A stretch of 33,988 bases of DNA, taken from sequence record OM401714.1; one strand, given 5' to 3'. The position numbers were made by a program, and so were the translations under genes. The notes beneath the pieces are model-generated. The model was not told the origin of the DNA. It saw only the letters and a program-made list of their open reading frames with translations, and did not search any database. Positions 6,997-27,021 of this stretch are shown here, piece after piece (the first letter of the stretch is position 1; each line of letters opens with the position of its first letter).

Positions 6997-7155
6997 ATGG
7001 AGAAAGTAAAGAAAGAAAGGGTAGTTTTTGGAATCAATATTGATAAAGAACTGAAGAGAAAATTAAAAGTATATTGTGCAAATACTAATAAAACTTTAAC
7101 CGAGACAATTGAAGAAGCTTTGGAAGAATATTTGCAAAAAAGGGGAGTTAAATGA
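6997..7155 (+). CDS. svtR: SvtR-like RHH transcriptional repressor, 52 aa (not in ORF track)
   Basis: Manual translation: MEKVKKERVVFGINIDKELKRKLKVYCANTNKTLTETIEEALEEYLQKRGVK. GAGG RBS and TATA+TGTCATA upstream. Confidence 0.9.
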   Translation: MEKVKKERVVFGINIDKELKRKLKVYCANTNKTLTETIEEALEEYLQKRGVK

Positions 7156-8849: not shown

Positions 8850-9857
8850 ATGAAAACCGTAATTTTGACCATGAATTATTCATCTATTCGTAACGTTAGT
8901 GAAGATATTGCACAAGTTCTTAGAAAAAATGGAGAAATTGTAACAATTTCAACAAATCCGTATTTAATTCCACAAAGTGATAAATTAATAATATTCATGC
9001 CATTTCATCCACCTTCACTAAATCCTTTTCTTTATACATTTAGAGAATTTAAAGGAAAGAAGTATTTTTATACTACTTGTGATGGTCAACCTAATATAAA
9101 TATTGTAAATCAATATTTATTAGAAAATATAACATTTATTCCAAATTCAAAATTTACAGCTCAAAATTTACAAGAAGTTGGCTTAAATGTTGATTTACCA
9201 GTTTTTCATGGTATAAATTTTGAAATTGTAGAAAAAGCTGAACAATTATCACAACAATTAAAACAAAAATTAGATAGAGATTTTCCAAATACTGTAAAAT
9301 TTGGAATTGTTAGCGGTTTAACTAAAAGAAAAAATATGGATCTCATGATAAGAGTTTTCCAAGAAATAAATACTAAAATTCCAGATTTGGCTAAGAAAGT
9401 TCACTTTTTTGTAATTTCGCATAAAGACTTTAAAAATTATGAAGTTCCCGAAAATGTGCATTTTGTCTCAGAATTTGGCTATAATCCGAGAGAATATATA
9501 TTTGCTTTCTACAAAATTATGGATTTTGTAATTGTGCCAAGCGGAACTGAGGGCTTTGGACTTCCAGTTCTAGAAAGTATGGCCATGGGAACTCCAGTTA
9601 TCCATCAATTAATGCCACCGTTTGACGAATTTACATCTTGGCAATGGAATTTACTAATTAAATCTTCAGAAGTTGAAGAATACTATGACAAAACTCATGG
9701 ACAAAAATGGAAAATTCATAAATTTGATATTCAAGATATGATAAACGCTATAATAATAGCTTCAGAATTGAAAGATAGAGATGAGAGAAGTAAAAATTTA
9801 AGAGAATTAGCTAAGAAATATAATATAGAAAATTTGTATGTTAGATTTTTAGAGTGA
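8850..9857 (+). CDS. GT-B (GT4-like) glycosyltransferase, 335 aa
   Basis: PSGTEGFGLPVLESMAMGTPVI (E-x7-E) motif. Confidence 0.93.
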   Translation: MKTVILTMNYSSIRNVSEDIAQVLRKNGEIVTISTNPYLIPQSDKLIIFMPFHPPSLNPFLYTFREFKGKKYFYTTCDGQPNINIVNQYLLENITFIPNSKFTAQNLQEVGLNVDLPVFHGINFEIVEKAEQLSQQLKQKLDRDFPNTVKFGIVSGLTKRKNMDLMIRVFQEINTKIPDLAKKVHFFVISHKDFKNYEVPENVHFVSEFGYNPREYIFAFYKIMDFVIVPSGTEGFGLPVLESMAMGTPVIHQLMPPFDEFTSWQWNLLIKSSEVEEYYDKTHGQKWKIHKFDIQDMINAIIIASELKDRDERSKNLRELAKKYNIENLYVRFLE

Positions 9858-15462: not shown

Positions 15463-15681
15463 ATTACTATTTTTTTCAAATTCTTGAGATAACACTTTTG
15501 AGCTATATCTTTTTATCTAAAACTTTTTTCTATATAAACGTTTTTACGCTCTTTTTTTGCGTAAAATTACGTTAAGAAAAGTAAAAATCTCGAGAGATAA
15601 GAGTTTAAAAAGATTTCTTGTAAATTAACGCTTTGAGTTTATATAGTTATCATTACAATTTCTTAGCAAAATAATGAGAAA

Positions 15682-15705
15682 AAATATCATCTAGAGAATT
15701 GAAAG
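15682..15705 (+). other. Solitary CRISPR-repeat-like 24-mer (no array)
   Basis: AAATATCATCTAGAGAATTGAAAG: exact ATTGAAAG 3' handle and 17/20 matches to the 3' part of the Sulfolobus repeat ...ATCTACTATAGAATTGAAAG. Confidence 0.35.
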
Positions 15706-15792
15706 AACTTTTATGCTTGTATTTTTTTACATAAAACAATTTTTACTTTTACAACAACATTTATAATTTTATAATATACACATAATAATAAT

Positions 15793-18700
15793 ATGAGTTT
15801 CCTCTTAAATCTTGGAGATTTAGGAACATTTTTTTCAGATGAGCTAACAGCATTAGAACAATTTACAAATTTCTTAAGTTCTGATTTTATAAACTTTTTT
15901 AGTACTGTAGTTAATGATATTGAAAATGTTGTAAGTTTCTTAGGTCAAGCAATTAGCGATATTCCTACTTTTATGCAAAAAATTGCTAACAATTTCTTAA
16001 CTGTTTTGCAGAATTTTGTACAAACTGCAATTCCAGTAGTAAGTGGATTTTTAACATTTCTTGAACAACAAATTGTAAATGTATTTCAAGATTTATCTTC
16101 TTTAGCTTCTACATTTATAAATGATGCTTATTCATTTTTCCAAGATGTTGTTAATGTATTTTCACAAATAATAAGTGTTGTTGTGCAAGATTTTCTAAAT
16201 TTCGTTGGTCAAAATATGAAACATATTAGTTCTTCAATTTCGCAAATTACACAATTTCTAACGCCCTTTATCGCACCTATTACAATTGGTAAATTTTTGC
16301 CAACAATAATAGACAAATTAGCTGAAATTCTTCCAGAAGTTGAAATTGATTTAGCTCCAGTTGGCTTAGGTGGAAAAATTCCAATTAACTTTGGAGAAAT
16401 TGTAAAAGCGTTTGCGGAAACTAGTGTTGATTTTCTAAATGAAGTCAGACAAGAAATTCAAGTTACACTTAAAGAATTTATAAAAGAACCATTTATTTCA
16501 GATTTTAAAATTACTGCGAGAGAAATATTTAATGAAATTGGACTTGGAGATTTACCATTTGCAGATCCTCCATTTGTACAAATTGCAAAATGGGTAGGTG
16601 CAAGATCATTTTCTGAAATTAAAGATCATTTAAGAGAAACAATTCTATTAACTGGATTTCCAGCATGGTTTACGGACGCTTATCTAGAATCTCCAGTTGA
16701 TGATTTCGTGCCAAGAAATCCACTTTTTAAACCAGTTAGTATAAGAGATGTAATTTTAGCTTCTCAATACGGAATTGTAGACTTTAGTGCAGTTTCTCAA
16801 TACGCTGAAAATAATTTAATAACTCCAAAAACTGCTAAATTAATGTATCAAAATGAAACTGCTAGATTATTACAAAGAGCAGTAGAATTAGGAATTAGAC
16901 AATTCGTTATTTCTCCAAATGAAGCTTATCAAGAAATAATAAATAATATAAATTTAGCTGGAAAAGACTTATATCTAAAAGTTTTCACTTTAGAATATAA
17001 TTATTCAGTTCAAAGAATTGTTAGACAATTTTTAAGAACACTTTTAAGTCGTGCCTTAACCAATTTTGGAAGACCTTATATAGATTTAAAGTTTTTAGAA
17101 TCTACAGTTCAAAAATTATTTAAAGAACTTAATTATCCTGAAGAAGTTCAAAATGTTTTTAACATTATGATAGAACAATCTCAAATTGTCTACACTAATC
17201 AATTACTTTTGACACAATTAGAACAACTTACAAGATTAGGAATATTTGATGAAAAGAAAGTGAGAGAAATACTAAAAGCTAATAATTTTAATGAACAACT
17301 TACATTAACAATTTTGAATTATGAACTTCAACATGTACAATTACAGTATATCTTAAAAGAATTTCAATTTAAATTACAAAATTACATTATTAGTTCAAAA
17401 GATGTGGAAAAAGAGTTAAAACATTTAGGCTTTGATTCTTCTATAATTTCTGAAGTCATATTTGAATATCAAACTGCTCCATTAACGAAATATCAAATTA
17501 GCCAAATTGAAAGCTTAGCAAGAAAAGGATATTTATCAGCTGATGAAATTATAAAACAATTACATAGTTTAGGTGTAATTAAAGAATTTGAAGACATATT
17601 TATCACTTATGTAAATCAAGAAATTCAAATATCTTCAATTCTCTCCATTATAAAACAACAATTAAGGAATTTCCTAATAGATTCAAAAACTGTAGAAAAT
17701 GAATTAAAAGCATTAAAAATTAACGAATATTTAATAAACGAAATAATTCAAGAAGAATATAACATAAATATTGCTAAATTGCAATTATCATATTTGGAAA
17801 CTTTAGCTAAGAATTTATACTATGATCAAGCTCAATTGTCTGGAGAATTAGCAAAAATTTTGAAAGATAGAACTGCAATTGATTTATATGCTCAAAAATT
17901 CTATTATGAATATGTATTTCCAAAAATTGTAAATTATTACACACAATTAGCAAGACACGGTATTATTTCTAAGATTTCTAATTTACCAAAAGAAATTGTA
18001 CAATATGAAATTCAACCCGCAATTCAAGTTTTCCAACTCACGACAGAATTAGAATATATAAAATCACTATTAAGAGATCTAGAAATTAAACCAACAGATG
18101 CTATAAATGAATTAGAAAAATTAGGAATGCAAAAAGACTTAGCTACTTTATTTGTACAAACTTATATACCGACATTTTTCAATTTACATACAATTATTCA
18201 AAATATTATTGAAGGTCAGCTTTTCAAAGTCGGAAAAATTCCGATTAACTTAGGAAATGCGGAACAACAATTAAGACAACTAGGAATTCCAGAAAATCAA
18301 ATCAAAGTTTTACTAGAACAATATGCTTCAAGTTTTGGTCTTGAAATTTGGAGAAAATTCTTACCTTCACTTTCTCAAATTGAAACTGCAATAAAGTATA
18401 ACTTTCCAATTAATCAATTAGTTGAATATTCATTTATACCATCTGAATTTCTAAATCTTTATGCTAATTTATATCAACATGAATTAGTAGGACAATATGT
18501 GCAATCTTTGAGAAGTGAATATATTCAACTTCTCACCTATGGAGTGCAAAATATACAATTAGAAAGTTTGATGAGACAATATGGAATTAATGATGTTTTC
18601 TTAAACGTTTTCAAATTATCAGCTCAAATTAGAAAATTATTAATGGCTTATCAAGAGCTTTATATCACGCCATCTAAAGCGTTATCGATTAGTGAATATT

Positions 18701-18969
18701 TATCAAATCCAACACAATTATTACAAAAAGTCTTTTCTGACTTCCAAGTTCCTTCAGACTTACAAAATACATATTTCGAATATGCTAGAAATAGGAGAGT
18801 TAGGCGTTATGTTGATGAAATAATTACAACAATTAATTTACTATTTGAAAGGCAAAAAATAGATCTAAATACGGCTCAACAATATTTACAACAATTGAAA
18901 AAATACGGATTAACTGATGAAGAAATTCAATTAATCTTACTGAATTGGCAATTAAGGTCAGCATACTAA
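15793..18969 (+). CDS. Terminal-fibre structural protein (SIRV ORF1070-like), 1058 aa
   Basis: Size, position after hjc/ORF69, amphipathic N-terminus and helical internal repeats. Confidence 0.9.
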   Translation: MSFLLNLGDLGTFFSDELTALEQFTNFLSSDFINFFSTVVNDIENVVSFLGQAISDIPTFMQKIANNFLTVLQNFVQTAIPVVSGFLTFLEQQIVNVFQDLSSLASTFINDAYSFFQDVVNVFSQIISVVVQDFLNFVGQNMKHISSSISQITQFLTPFIAPITIGKFLPTIIDKLAEILPEVEIDLAPVGLGGKIPINFGEIVKAFAETSVDFLNEVRQEIQVTLKEFIKEPFISDFKITAREIFNEIGLGDLPFADPPFVQIAKWVGARSFSEIKDHLRETILLTGFPAWFTDAYLESPVDDFVPRNPLFKPVSIRDVILASQYGIVDFSAVSQYAENNLITPKTAKLMYQNETARLLQRAVELGIRQFVISPNEAYQEIINNINLAGKDLYLKVFTLEYNYSVQRIVRQFLRTLLSRALTNFGRPYIDLKFLESTVQKLFKELNYPEEVQNVFNIMIEQSQIVYTNQLLLTQLEQLTRLGIFDEKKVREILKANNFNEQLTLTILNYELQHVQLQYILKEFQFKLQNYIISSKDVEKELKHLGFDSSIISEVIFEYQTAPLTKYQISQIESLARKGYLSADEIIKQLHSLGVIKEFEDIFITYVNQEIQISSILSIIKQQLRNFLIDSKTVENELKALKINEYLINEIIQEEYNINIAKLQLSYLETLAKNLYYDQAQLSGELAKILKDRTAIDLYAQKFYYEYVFPKIVNYYTQLARHGIISKISNLPKEIVQYEIQPAIQVFQLTTELEYIKSLLRDLEIKPTDAINELEKLGMQKDLATLFVQTYIPTFFNLHTIIQNIIEGQLFKVGKIPINLGNAEQQLRQLGIPENQIKVLLEQYASSFGLEIWRKFLPSLSQIETAIKYNFPINQLVEYSFIPSEFLNLYANLYQHELVGQYVQSLRSEYIQLLTYGVQNIQLESLMRQYGINDVFLNVFKLSAQIRKLLMAYQELYITPSKALSISEYLSNPTQLLQKVFSDFQVPSDLQNTYFEYARNRRVRRYVDEIITTINLLFERQKIDLNTAQQYLQQLKKYGLTDEEIQLILLNWQLRSAY

Positions 18970-19057: not shown

Positions 19058-20758
19058 ATGAGTTTACCATATAAAGTACGTTTCAAATTACCTTTAGAAT
19101 TTTTAACTTTACAAGACTGGAATAACTTTGTACAAAATTTATTGTTTATAAATCAATATGGTTCGGCAAAATTATTACAATATTATCAAAATGGCAATTT
19201 TCAGAATTTAAATGATGTAATTGCAAAATATCTATATGTTTCAGCTTTAAAAATCGCTGGATATAATGTTTTACATAATTTATCTGCACCGTTAGCTTAT
19301 ACCTTTGGAGAAGGAAAACAACAACCGTTTGAAAGCATGGCAAATAAACCAATAATTCAATTGAAGTCTATAATATTTCCAATTCTAAATTTTCAGATAC
19401 AATTATCTAAAGTTAGTAAACAATTACAACTATTAATTCCTAAATTAACAAGTAAAATTATAACTCCTAATAATATTGCAGGTACTCAATTTATATTTTC
19501 TGGAACTGCAACAGTTGAGCAACTTATTGAAAATTATTTAGACCCATCATATTTACAAACATGGAGAGAAATAATAATACAAAATCTTGGAACTTCTGCA
19601 GTACAAATAAACAATTCTATCTATCTAATGCCTAAGAATTGTCTAAAAATAACTGCAAGTTCTCCATCAGAAATTCAATTAACTGCACAAACCCCAACTT
19701 TATTAAGTGAAGAAATTGAATTTACTGGAATTCCGATAACATTTTATACAATTACAATAACAAATAATCAACCAGATCCAACACCTTTACCATTTCAACA
19801 ATTGTTAAATTTGAATTTATCATCTATATTATCAAGTTCTAGTCAACTTTTGAATTTACAATTTTGCTTAGATGTGAATTGTAATACTCCATTATATGCA
19901 TGGATTGAAAGTTACAATTCGAATTTATCAAGTGTTTATATTTGGATAAATTTACCAACTTCAATTCCCGCAAATGGCTCATTAACTATCTATATGTTTA
20001 TCAGAAATTCAATACAATATCCTTACACTGGAATAAGACCAGATTTAACCACAACTTACGCACAATATGATAATGGAAAAAATGTATTTTTAATTTATTT
20101 TAACGGAAATGAACCATTATCTAATTTTAATAATCAAGGAAATTCATTAACTCAAATATCCACAACTGGGCCGTTAGGAAATACAATAAATGCAATTTAT
20201 ATAAGCGGTTATAATTCACATTTTGGATTTGTATATACTCCTAAATATATATCAAATCAACCAGTAATTGCAGAATCATCAGTAATAGATTTAGGAAATC
20301 AAGCCGGTGGATTAAATGCAGATAACGGATTTTCTTCTATAGTTGATAGTACTTCAATTGGTAATTTAAATGCTATAAGCGTAGATATGGGATATTCCGG
20401 TTCTTATTTTTCTAATGATTATTTTATAAGTGGAACTCAAACTTCTGATGTAAATCCTCAAGGATCCGCAGTATCACAATGGCTTTATGCATGGGTTGTA
20501 TATTCTGGATCATCAGCTAGTTCATGGTATGGATGTATAGCTCCTCAATTTTATAGTTCAACTGGCGGTTATTGTGGTACAGTTAACAATAATCCATTTT
20601 CTAGTTCTTCTCAATTATATTTAGGTATAATTGGTAGTGTAAATTCTAGTTATCAATGGCAAACCGCATGGAACTTTATGAGATTAAGAGCTTATCCACC
20701 AAATAATATCATGCCTTCAAATTCTCAACCACAAAAAACTATAATATTAATCACGTGA
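19058..20758 (+). CDS. Putative minor virion / receptor-binding protein with DUF2341-like domain, 566 aa
   Basis: The N-part resembles the 267-aa ORF. From aa ~229 it has ITITNN...LQF...PLYAWIE...YIWINLP..IPANGSLTIYM, then a beta-rich S/N/G region. Confidence 0.75.
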   Translation: MSLPYKVRFKLPLEFLTLQDWNNFVQNLLFINQYGSAKLLQYYQNGNFQNLNDVIAKYLYVSALKIAGYNVLHNLSAPLAYTFGEGKQQPFESMANKPIIQLKSIIFPILNFQIQLSKVSKQLQLLIPKLTSKIITPNNIAGTQFIFSGTATVEQLIENYLDPSYLQTWREIIIQNLGTSAVQINNSIYLMPKNCLKITASSPSEIQLTAQTPTLLSEEIEFTGIPITFYTITITNNQPDPTPLPFQQLLNLNLSSILSSSSQLLNLQFCLDVNCNTPLYAWIESYNSNLSSVYIWINLPTSIPANGSLTIYMFIRNSIQYPYTGIRPDLTTTYAQYDNGKNVFLIYFNGNEPLSNFNNQGNSLTQISTTGPLGNTINAIYISGYNSHFGFVYTPKYISNQPVIAESSVIDLGNQAGGLNADNGFSSIVDSTSIGNLNAISVDMGYSGSYFSNDYFISGTQTSDVNPQGSAVSQWLYAWVVYSGSSASSWYGCIAPQFYSSTGGYCGTVNNNPFSSSSQLYLGIIGSVNSSYQWQTAWNFMRLRAYPPNNIMPSNSQPQKTIILIT

Positions 20759-20765
20759 TGTAAAA

Positions 20766-22304
20766 ATGTCTTCAACTTACTGCGTTCAATTACCAGAAAA
20801 TCTTTTATTATTATCTATGACCACAGTAAATCCTATAAATTTTACATCTTTGCAATTTTCATTAAGCGTAAATTCGCTAGTTATTTTTCTATTTTCAAAA
20901 TATCCTTTTAATGCCGGTTATTATAATAATTTTTGTGTTAATGCTGATGAATTTGGATTTGCACAAGTTGGTCAAAATTTCAATATAGATTTATCAAATT
21001 ATCAAAATTATTATATGTTAATGTTAATTTATCCACAAGGAATTAGTTTAAAGAGTTTTAAAAGTTGCGTTCCGGCTCAAGGTTTAACTATGACTTTTCA
21101 GAATACAACAATTTCACCAATTGGAAGCGAAACTGTAATTAATAATTTTGATGGTCAAAAAGAAACTGGATTTTGTTTATGTTATGATGGTCAAAGTCAT
21201 GTAATAGGAATTCTATGTAATAATTCAAATTATGTTTCTGCTATTTCATTAGATAATTTAAATAATCAATTATTAATAATGACTTGTCAAGGATTTATTT
21301 ATCAAAATAATACAACTGTAGGATTTATAACACCAAGTACATGCGGTACTTTTGGTTCATATTTAACAGCAGAAATAACATTTATTGCAAATCAATCAGT
21401 TATAGATTTTTTACAAAATAATGGTATCTCTTATAATATTTTATCATCTACTTCATGTCAATCAACTTATAAATTACTTCCATGTACTTTACCATGCAAA
21501 TCATTTTATCAAATTACAAAATTATTATCTCCTCCAACTAAATATTCATTAATTTCCTCAAATTTGTGGAATGAAATTGTACAAGATTTATATCTAACTT
21601 ATAGCGTATTTAAATACATTAGATATTTAACACAATATGCATATTTAGATTATATATATCCTACAATTTTAGACTTTTATAATTTTTATGAGAACTTTCA
21701 ACCATATTCATTTGTTCCGTTATTGTATGCACAAAAAGGAATTCCATTAACTGTAAATGATTTTAACAAATTAATAGATGCAATTATAGAATTAGCAAAT
21801 GAAAATAATATAAAATTGCAAAAAGGACTTTCTTACGTTCAACGTGATCAAGTCGTAAAAGCTAAACAATTTGCAGATATAGTTTATGATGTTAATCAAT
21901 TTCTAACTTTCAATCAAAATCAATATTTTCTATTAGATTGTAATGGATCAATTTTCTCGAATTTATTAAATACACAAAATGCATTTCTAAATGTTATAAT
22001 TAACAATCTAGTAAATTCACTTAATATTCCTTCAAACGTTTATATTAAAAACTTATTAATATATACTTCAAATCAAACTATTTATAATTACGGTGCAATA
22101 GATAAATTAATAATTAATATTAATAACGGCGAAATTTATCTTAATGATAATTCATTTATAAATTATCTACTTATAACTGACAATAATAACAATATTTATA
22201 TAAATGATAATTCAGTAATAAATAATTTAATTTGTATTAGCAATACTGGAACTATAAATATCTCAGCAAATGCAATAATTAAAAATAATCAGTGTAATTT
22301 ATAA
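20766..22304 (+). CDS. Putative minor virion protein (SIRV2 ORF564-like), 512 aa
   Basis: Lies in the fibre operon. Has LWNEIVQDL / DFNKLIDAI motifs and C-terminal Asn/Ile beta-helix-like repeats. Confidence 0.75.
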   Translation: MSSTYCVQLPENLLLLSMTTVNPINFTSLQFSLSVNSLVIFLFSKYPFNAGYYNNFCVNADEFGFAQVGQNFNIDLSNYQNYYMLMLIYPQGISLKSFKSCVPAQGLTMTFQNTTISPIGSETVINNFDGQKETGFCLCYDGQSHVIGILCNNSNYVSAISLDNLNNQLLIMTCQGFIYQNNTTVGFITPSTCGTFGSYLTAEITFIANQSVIDFLQNNGISYNILSSTSCQSTYKLLPCTLPCKSFYQITKLLSPPTKYSLISSNLWNEIVQDLYLTYSVFKYIRYLTQYAYLDYIYPTILDFYNFYENFQPYSFVPLLYAQKGIPLTVNDFNKLIDAIIELANENNIKLQKGLSYVQRDQVVKAKQFADIVYDVNQFLTFNQNQYFLLDCNGSIFSNLLNTQNAFLNVIINNLVNSLNIPSNVYIKNLLIYTSNQTIYNYGAIDKLIININNGEIYLNDNSFINYLLITDNNNNIYINDNSVINNLICISNTGTINISANAIIKNNQCNL

Positions 22305-25830: not shown

Positions 25831-27021
25831 ATGGAATTTCAAAGAAAAAGTTCAGGTATAATAAAAAGTTTCAATTCTCTAGATATTTTTTCTATTAACT
25901 TATTGTACATGGGAATCTTAAGCGGTATAAGTTATCCATTATTTGTCTCTGAAATGATGAAAAATGTAAACTTATTATTTGCGATTCTAATAGGTTCTGC
26001 TTTTGGAATTCCATTACTTGTAATGTATTACGTATTAACTAAAAAAATTCCGTTAAATGGTGGAGATTATGCTTATATTCGTTCAACATTTTCGCCGAAA
26101 TTCTATACAATTTTCGGAATTTCGTTATGGTTAATTTATGTATTTTCAGCTCCAGTTTTATCAGATCTAGTTTTACTCAATTTCAATATTCCAACAATTG
26201 AGAAATTCTTTATTTCAGAATTATTATTTGCTATTGCTTTACTTAGCATAGTGAAAAAGTCAATTTACGCTTACATAGTTGATGGTTTGGCAATTTTACA
26301 AATAATTGTATCGTTAATCTTACCAATTTCAAGCTTCCATTTTGAATTTGAAAATTTCACTGTATCGAATACTTTACTTTCAGCTTTACTATTTGATTTA
26401 GCAATGTTTCTATTCTTGAATGCAATTAGTTATATAGCTGGTGAAACAAAGAATGTAAATAGAAGCATGAAAATAGGATATTTTGTAAGCTATTTAGTAG
26501 TTACTGTATTAGCAATATTAGACAGTTATTCAAATCTAAATATATTATTTATATTAATGCCAATTTGGTTCATGAGCTATATTTTTGTAACTTCTATGAT
26601 ACAAAGCAGATTAGTGCAAAATTTAGCATTTGATAAAATCTTACCCGAGAAATTCACAAAAATAACGCCTAACGCACTTTTATTAATCTTTACTGCTGAT
26701 ACAATTACAAATATTCTAGAAAATCTTCTAAACTTTTCAATTTCATTTGGGTTTGACGGTCTATTATTCATATTCTGGAATTTTATAGTTGTTAGTTTTG
26801 CATTTCTAAAGTTGACAAACAAAAAATTATTATTTTCAGTTGTACTAATTAGTTTAGCTTTACAAATTTTCCTATTCTTCTATTTAGGTATGCAAAATCA
26901 AATATTCTATAGTTTCGTAATTGAAGGTAACATACTATATACTATATTAAGAATATTGATAATGCCAATTTTAGGCGGAATTATTTACTTATTAAGGAGA
27001 AAAGTGATAAATGTTGAATAA
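25831..27021 (+). CDS. APC-superfamily (amino-acid permease-like) transporter, 396 aa
   Basis: About 11 hydrophobic segments with RKSSGIIK, PLNGGDYAYI and SYIAGETKN permease motifs. Confidence 0.85.
   Translation: MEFQRKSSGIIKSFNSLDIFSINLLYMGILSGISYPLFVSEMMKNVNLLFAILIGSAFGIPLLVMYYVLTKKIPLNGGDYAYIRSTFSPKFYTIFGISLWLIYVFSAPVLSDLVLLNFNIPTIEKFFISELLFAIALLSIVKKSIYAYIVDGLAILQIIVSLILPISSFHFEFENFTVSNTLLSALLFDLAMFLFLNAISYIAGETKNVNRSMKIGYFVSYLVVTVLAILDSYSNLNILFILMPIWFMSYIFVTSMIQSRLVQNLAFDKILPEKFTKITPNALLLIFTADTITNILENLLNFSISFGFDGLLFIFWNFIVVSFAFLKLTNKKLLFSVVLISLALQIFLFFYLGMQNQIFYSFVIEGNILYTILRILIMPILGGIIYLLRRKVINVE

Follow-up and report, generated by a model that had tools for sequence, protein, structure and literature searches.

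A conserved CRISPR-repeat-like 3′ end in the tail-fibre control region of Sulfolobus islandicus rod-shaped viruses, with the host protein Cbp1 as its candidate reader

The tail-fibre control region and its promoters

The window, that is, the whole stretch of DNA analysed here (33,988 bp), is identical to OM401714.1, the whole genome of Sulfolobus islandicus rod-shaped virus isolate V65 (Usarudivirus, Yellowstone). The non-coding gap of 330 bp that the first-pass annotation placed before the fibre gene corresponds to positions 15463-15792, and this control region is homologous in all of the SIRV-clade genomes compared. The 24-mer AAATATCATCTAGAGAATTGAAAG, the 8-nt handle ATTGAAAG which closes it (15698-15705), two TATA-like boxes (~15604 and 15638-15645) and a T7 tract (15722-15728; possibly an archaeal terminator, or else simply T-rich promoter DNA) all lie where that annotation had put them. 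The control region was aligned across 14 SIRV genomes, comprising V65, V3, V60 and SIRV4-11 from Yellowstone, and SIRV1-3 from Iceland, with an overall identity of 70-100%. The features relevant to the argument are as follows.

7003..7146, + strand: homologue of SvtR (ORF56b), a viral RHH repressor (tblastn, 65% identity)
15463..15792, + strand: intergenic control region, 330 bp, with an ORF69-like gene on one side and the minor capsid / tail-fibre gene on the other (ORF list and GenBank annotation)
15603..15625, + strand: near-invariant block GTTTAAAAAGATTTCTTGTAAAT, with the TATA-like TTTAAAAA (15604-15611) inside it (alignment of 14 genomes)
15638..15645, + strand: distal TATA-like box TTTATATA, kept in 13/14 genomes; SIRV2 reads TTTTATAG
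15650..15661, + strand: invariant block TCATTACAATTT (alignment of 14 genomes)
15662..15696, + strand: 35-nt spacer, variable in sequence and invariant in length (no indels in 14 genomes), which takes in the non-conserved ‘repeat body’
15682..15705, + strand: repeat-like 24-mer AAATATCATCTAGAGAATTGAAAG (sequence read directly)
15697..15705, + strand: invariant 9-mer AATTGAAAG, with which Sulfolobales CRISPR repeats end on their 3′ side (an A followed by the 8-nt crRNA handle)
15706..15729, + strand: AACTTTTA..TTGTATTTTTTTA, kept in 11/14 genomes
15760..15767, + strand: proximal TATA box TTTATAAT, 33 nt before the tail-fibre ATG
15793..18969, + strand: minor capsid / tail-fibre gene (ORF1070 homologue, 1058 aa)

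The position of the tail-fibre promoter depends on the start codon, which requires correction in the Icelandic viruses. In tblastn, the alignment to SIRV1, 2 and 3 places residue 1 of the V65 tail fibre 36 nt inside ORF1070 as annotated. The annotated first ATG of these genes overlaps the TATA box TTTATAAT, and their second ATG gives an MSFL... N-terminus, as in the SIRV, SRV and Hoswirudivirus homologues. With the start codon corrected, TTTATAAT begins 33 nt before the ATG in the Icelandic and Yellowstone clades alike, and is likely the core promoter of a leaderless tail-fibre mRNA. The distance from the 9-mer to TTTATAAT is 39 nt in the Icelandic viruses, 63-64 nt in most of the Yellowstone viruses and ~148 nt in SIRV8-10; the 9-mer is therefore not a position-fixed part of this core promoter. 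It moves together with the other elements of a distal unit, made up of TTTATATA, TCATTACAATTT, the 35-nt spacer and AATTGAAAG.

A rival proposal is that the motif is itself a basal promoter part (a BRE-like GAAAG followed by a weak TATA-like CTTTTAT), or some other basal signal, read by TFB/TBP. Purine-rich BREs of the GAAAG type precede TATA boxes in strong Sulfolobus promoters, and AACTTTTA directly follows the motif in 11 of the 14 genomes. However, TTTTAG/TTTTAT makes a poor TATA box, the spacing of the G and A residues misfits the G at -6 and A at -3 of the described BRE (PMC11065993), and SIRV8, SIRV9 and SIRV10 keep AATTGAAAG whilst losing its TTTTA neighbour. A basal function also leaves the AATT part of the motif unexplained, and the gene already has a promoter in the conserved proximal TATA at -33, such that we regard a role for the motif in basal transcription as very unlikely.

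Conservation of the motif and its match to host repeats

The first-pass annotation had described the 24-mer as a mimic of a Sulfolobales CRISPR repeat. That repeat is real, with TAATCTACTATAGAATTGAAAG present hundreds of times, in long arrays, in four Saccharolobus genomes. Taken in a GATAATC form, which is our assumption, the F repeat would match the 24-mer at 18/24 positions; as printed in the oligo table of PMC10883916 (GCTAATC...), it matches at 17/24, and the claimed 17/20 match to the repeat end holds. The A, D and F repeats in the same table all end in GAATTGAAAG. Across these three repeats the 24-mer matches at 15-17 of 24 positions in V65, and at 13-17 in the relatives, which falls short of a full-length stand-alone repeat. 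The 14-nt repeat body upstream of GAATTGAAAG matches at 7/14 positions in V65 and at 3-7/14 in the relatives, which is the level of AT-rich DNA.

As a null model, 300 dinucleotide-preserving shuffles of the V65 genome were searched for the best 24-mer against any of the repeats. A match of at least 18/24 was found in 71% of the shuffles and a 17/20 match in 5%; mimicry of the whole repeat is thus no better than chance, and the first-pass description stands for the last 9 nt of the repeat only. The search for further repeats agreed with its statement that there is no second one: a single repeat-like site was found in the region, and no mini-CRISPR array (at least two repeats around a spacer, with a leader). 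The other copy of AGAATTGAAAG, which had been noted inside a gene, was located at 9764; both this copy and a near-copy at 25869-25884 are inside genes, far from the locus.

The 3′ end of the repeat-like sequence behaves differently from its body. The 9-mer AATTGAAAG (15697-15705) is invariant in all 14 aligned genomes, and its spacing from TCATTACAATTT is exactly 47 nt in every one of them, the 35 nt between the two differing in sequence whilst keeping their length. In SIRV10 the flanking sequence has diverged on either side, leaving AATTGAAAG as an island, the limits of which coincide with the 3′ end of the repeat. An insertion of ~84 nt starts 2-3 nt after the G of AATTGAAAG in SIRV8, SIRV9 and SIRV10; the insertions of these three viruses and of V60 gave no significant match in V65. 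Since the 9-mer is invariant and the body variable, the selected unit is the last 9 nt of the repeat, and not the whole repeat. As judged from the aligned genomes, the repeat-like 3′ end is under selection in this non-coding DNA.

The alternative is that ATTGAAAG happens to fall in a slowly evolving stretch of an AT-rich genome and is functionless. The 8-mer is indeed expected about five times per genome (10 copies observed in V65 versus 4.8 expected), and the similarity to the whole repeat is, as described above, at the level of chance. What chance does not account for is a 9-mer that stays invariant in 14 genomes amid changing flanks and that persists as an island in SIRV10. Moreover, this copy alone amongst the ten in V65 is kept at the orthologous site in SIRV2, despite the alignment there being the least conserved, and the nine other copies are not kept. 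A functionless coincidence therefore appears extremely unlikely.

Conservation in related rudiviruses, which the first-pass annotation had proposed as a check, holds for the 9-mer throughout the 14 SIRV genomes compared and does not extend to the repeat body or to the more distant rudiviruses: TTGAAAG is absent upstream of the gene in SBRV1, SRV, SSRV1, MRV1, ARV1-3 and SMRV1. A scan of IMG/VR for further rudiviruses carrying the element in this context returned known isolates only. Separately, a scan with TATAGAATTGAAAG gave mostly chance matches, together with a 20,222-bp contig carrying five copies in two clusters; this contig looks like a portoglobovirus with mini-arrays.

Candidate readers of the motif

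The first-pass annotation interpreted the site as an RNA anti-CRISPR or viral crRNA. Such a reading would have a short transcript run from a start near 15666-15670 to the T7 tract, carrying AUUGAAAG, and be cut by Cas6 or loaded onto Cas proteins as an RNA anti-CRISPR or crRNA-like guide. Several observations are of the kind expected. The distal TATA-like box, itself conserved, is 52 nt upstream, and the T7 tract (kept in 11/14 genomes) begins 17 nt downstream; the conserved island spans precisely the crRNA 5′ handle and the one base that precedes the Cas6 cut; the summit of the Cbp1 ChIP signal considered below adjoins the distal TATA-like box, as would fit an active promoter; and other Sulfolobales viruses carry stand-alone repeats (PMC6858448).

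The part of the repeat that Cas6 recognition requires, however, is the variable body, with its chance-level match (3-7/14). The pattern is the opposite of that described for a characterised Racr, which needs its Cas6-binding stem-loop, a dependence that the paper contrasts with changes to the 8-nt handle (PMC10651486). In SIRV8, SIRV9 and SIRV10 the T-tract is displaced by the 84-nt insertion. Folding of the putative small RNA gave no structure beyond chance (z = +0.30), and an alignment of nine sequences folded at -2.9 kcal/mol with no compensatory pair and no conserved hairpin; a search of Rfam at E <= 10 returned two meaningless matches only.

The sequence that would serve as a ‘spacer’ is a conserved self sequence, without a target in viruses or in eight genomes of the host genus. 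The 43 nt after the motif match only the same locus of sister SIRVs, and the first 23 nt have no match with three or fewer mismatches in the eight Saccharolobus genomes. A viral crRNA was rejected on the ground that the downstream sequence has no target. Public sequencing runs containing viral sequence were DNA metagenomes only, with at most 10% of its sequence words, and none was an RNA run; a literature search for a SIRV2 TSS map found none. With only the last 9 nt kept, and given the lack of structure, covariation, target, second repeat and Cas6-binding part, neither the RNA anti-CRISPR nor the viral crRNA is supported, and we consider any RNA-level function distinctly improbable.

A DNA-level function could involve a regulator which is unrelated to CRISPR, with AATTGAAAG as its operator (a second sub-site for SvtR, or a site for another viral or host factor) and the identity to the repeat a coincidence. 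The reverse complement of TCATTACAATTT, AAATTGTAATGA, is an imperfect inverted copy of GAATTGAAAGAA, and on this reading an imperfect inverted repeat would have AATTGAAAG and TCATTACAATTT as its arms, 47 nt apart. The two share a common core, AATTG.AA, in inverted orientation and at fixed spacing. SvtR is known to act on the control region of gp30 (ORF1070) in SIRV1, where it has its highest affinity, ~80 nt upstream of the TATA/BRE, and from where it may spread further (PMC5569661). In SIRV1 this distance from the gp30 TATA places the primary site on TCATTACAATTT or immediately beyond it. The SvtR consensus, ATnnTTCAAnAnnnnnAAAATG, contains TTCAA, the complement of TTGAA, and the region holds several further invariant blocks, so a conserved 9-mer is not rare here.

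Against this operator, the consensus ATnnTTCAAnAnnnnnAAAATG has no match with three or fewer mismatches at the motif, in either SIRV2 or V65, and is no commoner in these genomes than in shuffles, although a scan of this kind is uninformative in AT-rich DNA. The limits of the invariant island are those of the repeat 3′ end, and a Cbp1 peak lies in the homologous region of SIRV2. The N-terminal FGIYM stretch of SvtR, which we take to be the DNA-contacting strand of its RHH fold, also differs between the viruses (FGIYM in SIRV2, FGINI in V65), whereas the 9-mer never varies; given that the element is the same in Icelandic and Yellowstone viruses, a conserved host factor would be the better fit. 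A CRISPR-unrelated operator is the chief rival to a Cbp1 site, but on balance we think it unlikely.

Cbp1 is a three-HTH protein of the Sulfolobales which binds CRISPR repeat DNA, and its motif is most conserved over 6 bp near the 3′ end of the repeat (PMC10883916). Double mutations of the A repeat at A17C/A18C, T19G/T20G and A22C/A23C (AATTGAA), as well as at A6/T7, weaken binding, and Cbp1 also occupies many single ‘non-canonical’ sites outside arrays; one strongly bound example, in ISC1229, has little in common with repeats beyond GAATTGAAAG and an AT ~10 nt upstream (PMC10883916). The core of the Cbp1 site (AATTGA(A); A repeat positions 17-23) is present at the viral locus, with GAATTGAAAG identical to that of all four Cbp1-bound oligos. 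V65 carries both determinants, that is, ATC at the same offset followed by GAATTGAAAG. The upstream AT is found in 7/14 viruses, being ATC in V65, V3, V60 and SIRV8-11; SIRV1-3 have AAC and SIRV4-7 have AGT at this position. On a crude matrix built from four Cbp1-bound sequences only, the 24-mer is the top site in the V65 genome (17.1 bits versus 13.2 for the next); on the same crude matrix the orthologous SIRV2 site, a poor match outside the core, scores poorly (rank 105).

The supplementary data of the Cbp1 study include a peak at AJ344259.1:20351 (8.4-fold) in SIRV2-infected LAL14/1 cells (PMC10883916 Supplementary File 4); viral peaks are not discussed in its text. This peak is the strongest of 11 viral Cbp1 summits, the others being 3.0-5.4, and lies within the homologous SIRV2 intergenic region (277 bp), 64 bp upstream of AATTGAAAG (20415-20423). 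A site chosen in advance would fall this close (64 bp or less) to the top peak with a probability of ~0.4%.

The summit is nonetheless ~54 bp from the expected cross-link centre. It corresponds to approximately position 15633 of V65, 5 nt upstream of the distal TATA-like box and just downstream of the block GTTTAAAAAGATTTCTTGTAAAT. The motif windows used in PMC10883916 were +/-80 bp for P2 and +/-50 bp for REY15A, and the 64-bp offset is inside the former and outside the latter. Because the summit adjoins the distal TATA-like box, the peak is perhaps promoter-associated; it could also be background signal, which the authors of PMC10883916 report to be raised in infected cells. Given the offset, the ChIP evidence is regional and not site-specific. 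A perfect GAATTGAAAG inside SIRV2 ORF1070 (21963-21972) has no Cbp1 peak listed, and SSRV1, which infects the Cbp1-bearing S. solfataricus, is without TTGAAAG upstream of the gene, which counts against Cbp1. That the peak is caused by the 9-mer is something we infer, as is every functional consequence of it.

Taken with the conservation of the 9-mer, these data lead us to favour, tentatively and at somewhat less than an even chance, the interpretation that AATTGAAAG is bound by a protein as double-stranded DNA within the tail-fibre control region, most likely by host Cbp1. In such a model, Cbp1, with or without Cren7, would sit downstream of the distal TATA-like box and upstream of the proximal TATA and, together with the viral repressor SvtR, would help to keep the late structural gene, or the distal promoter, quiet. 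Cbp1 is known to damp promoters close to its non-canonical sites; TSSs near such sites tend to go up on deletion of cbp1, and Cbp1 transcripts stand at ~100 TPM compared with 1,400-1,800 for Cren7 (PMC10883916). As Cbp1 is of low abundance, a rising viral copy number could lift its repression and draw it off CRISPR arrays. If Cbp1 does read the motif, this would be the first example of a virus in which a site bound by a CRISPR-array-specific chromatin protein is conserved. Late-gene control in a model archaeal virus would then be tied to the host CRISPR expression machinery, the possibility of anti-CRISPR activity by a DNA decoy, and not by a protein or RNA, would arise, and the stand-alone repeats of other viruses and plasmids of the Sulfolobales, so far unexplained, might gain a function.

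A more elaborate version, which we consider improbable, is that a conserved viral DNA mimic of the repeat end captures scarce Cbp1, acting both as a copy-number timer for the late gene and as a DNA-decoy anti-CRISPR. At a single genome copy, Cbp1 would help to silence the tail-fibre control region; hundreds of viral copies would then out-titrate Cbp1, releasing the late gene, and the stripping of Cbp1 from the long CRISPR arrays of the host would lower pre-crRNA output. Even if the motif proves to be an ordinary operator, the control region of the tail-fibre gene has been mapped and its start codon corrected in the reference genomes.

Comparison with known systems

Four groups of known elements invite comparison. 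The Racrs, or solitary repeat units, of phages and plasmids (Camara-Wilpert et al. 2023, PMC10651486) resemble the locus described here in being solitary, repeat-like, non-coding viral sequences with a promoter-like element upstream and no cas genes. They differ in that Racrs resemble the whole repeat and need a Cas6-binding stem-loop, whereas here the handle end only is conserved.

The stand-alone repeats and mini-CRISPR arrays of SPV1, SPV2, ATV and others (Medvedeva et al. 2019, PMC6858448) likewise carry host-type repeat sequence, in intergenic DNA of Sulfolobales viruses, with no recognisable leader. Those repeats are full-length and the spacers of the mini-arrays target rival viruses; the V65 locus has a single terminal match of 9-11 nt and lacks a spacer for which any target was found.

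Rudiviral promoters are also known to carry operators for small DNA-binding proteins, host ones included: SvtR acts on that of gp30/ORF1070, in the same control region, and Sta1 on promoters 56, 134 and 399 (PMC5569661, PMC1635249). The motif misfits both published consensuses, and its candidate reader, Cbp1, differs from these regulators in being a CRISPR-array-specific chromatin factor.

On the sequence features compared, the element would work most like the non-canonical Cbp1 sites, such as those in ISC1229 and in the leaders of CRISPR arrays 3-5 of S. islandicus LAL14/1 (Blombach et al. 2024, PMC10883916), and it lacks defining features of Racrs/SRUs, mini-CRISPR arrays and full stand-alone repeats. 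As at those sites, a single copy is present outside an array and beside promoters, with the core GAATTGAAAG and, in V65, also the upstream AT, and with few other resemblances. The homologous region of SIRV2 contains a Cbp1 ChIP peak, but its summit is 64 bp off. Unlike the sites described in PMC10883916, a study that does not mention it, the candidate site lies on a virus genome and is conserved across a virus clade.

ORF1070 start codon and the flanks of the control region

The start of the minor capsid/tail-fibre gene (ORF1070 and its V65 homologue) was compared in both clades:

Window 15760-15795: start region in V65
L002:1774-1812 (SIRV2 20451-20489): start region in SIRV2, with counterparts in L003 (SIRV1) and L014 (SIRV3)

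In SIRV1, 2 and 3 the ORF1070 start has probably been annotated 12 codons too early; a conserved TATA box, TTTATAAT, overlaps the first ATG, the one annotated, and it is the second ATG that yields the conserved MSFL... N-terminus. TTTATAAT begins 33 nt upstream of the true tail-fibre start, at the same spacing in Icelandic and Yellowstone viruses.

The gene on the other side of the control region was compared at window 15463:

L002:1152-1496: DUF1874 gene ORF114 of SIRV2
L003: DUF1874 gene gp29 of SIRV1

A DUF1874 gene directly adjoins the control region on its upstream side in SIRV1, 2 and 3, and is missing at the corresponding position in V65 and the other Yellowstone viruses examined. The literature describes ORF114/gp29 as the AcrIII-1 ring nuclease.

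Candidate operators and the SvtR homologue

Window 15542-15566 and 15620-15632: palindrome TTTTACGC-N9-GCGTAAAA and TTACG/TAACG motifs
Window 7003-7146: homologue of the viral repressor SvtR (ORF56b), 65% identical to the SIRV2 protein

The TTACG/TAACG motifs are repeated within the upstream half of the intergenic gap and, together with the palindrome, are conserved in the 14 genomes apart from minor differences; both are candidate operator sites. The V65 SvtR homologue differs from that of SIRV2 at two residues (Y to N and M to I) of an N-terminal stretch presumed to form the DNA-contacting strand, which suggests an operator specificity co-evolving between the Icelandic and Yellowstone lineages.

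Insertions, duplications and a second copy in the permease gene

L010:607-690 (SIRV9), also L011 (SIRV8) and L013 (SIRV10): ~84-nt insertion immediately 3' of AATTGAAAG(A/T)A
L009:356-600 (V60): extra ~216 nt at the 5' end of the homologous intergenic region
Window 25869-25884, - strand: exact second ATCTAGAGAATTGAAA, within the amino-acid permease gene (25831-27021)

The ~84-nt insertion contains a 7-bp inverted repeat (CTTCTTC...GAAGAAG), is wholly unlike between SIRV9 and SIRV10 over its first ~38 nt, and has no significant match in V65. Part of the extra V60 sequence duplicates gene-end/terminator sequence (AAATCATAAATTAGTATTTTTTTCAA).

The second ATCTAGAGAATTGAAA (E = 0.002) is flanked on either side by gapped similarity to the intergenic element. 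Its central GAGAATTGAAA is specific to V65, differing in SIRV4, 9, 11, V3 and SIRV2; the copy could reflect gene conversion over a short patch, or be coincidental.

Terminal AATTGAAAG copies and Cbp1 occupancy

L143:238-246 and 1136-1144: AATTGAAAG in the SIRV2 terminus
34307 and 35205: mirror copies at the opposite end

Each SIRV2 terminal region carries AATTGAAAG twice, one copy coinciding with the TTG start of ORF83a/b; the 9-mer is absent from the V65 termini. ChIP data are uninformative on the terminal SIRV2 copies because reads there would multi-map. At CRISPR array 1 of the host LAL14/1, Cbp1 enrichment is 13.6 in uninfected cells vs 6.1 in one infected replicate (PMC10883916 source data, Figure 5 sheet). 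The authors ascribe the generally lower Cbp1 values in infected cells to background (PMC10883916); a global drop in enrichment would also be expected from titration of Cbp1 by viral DNA.
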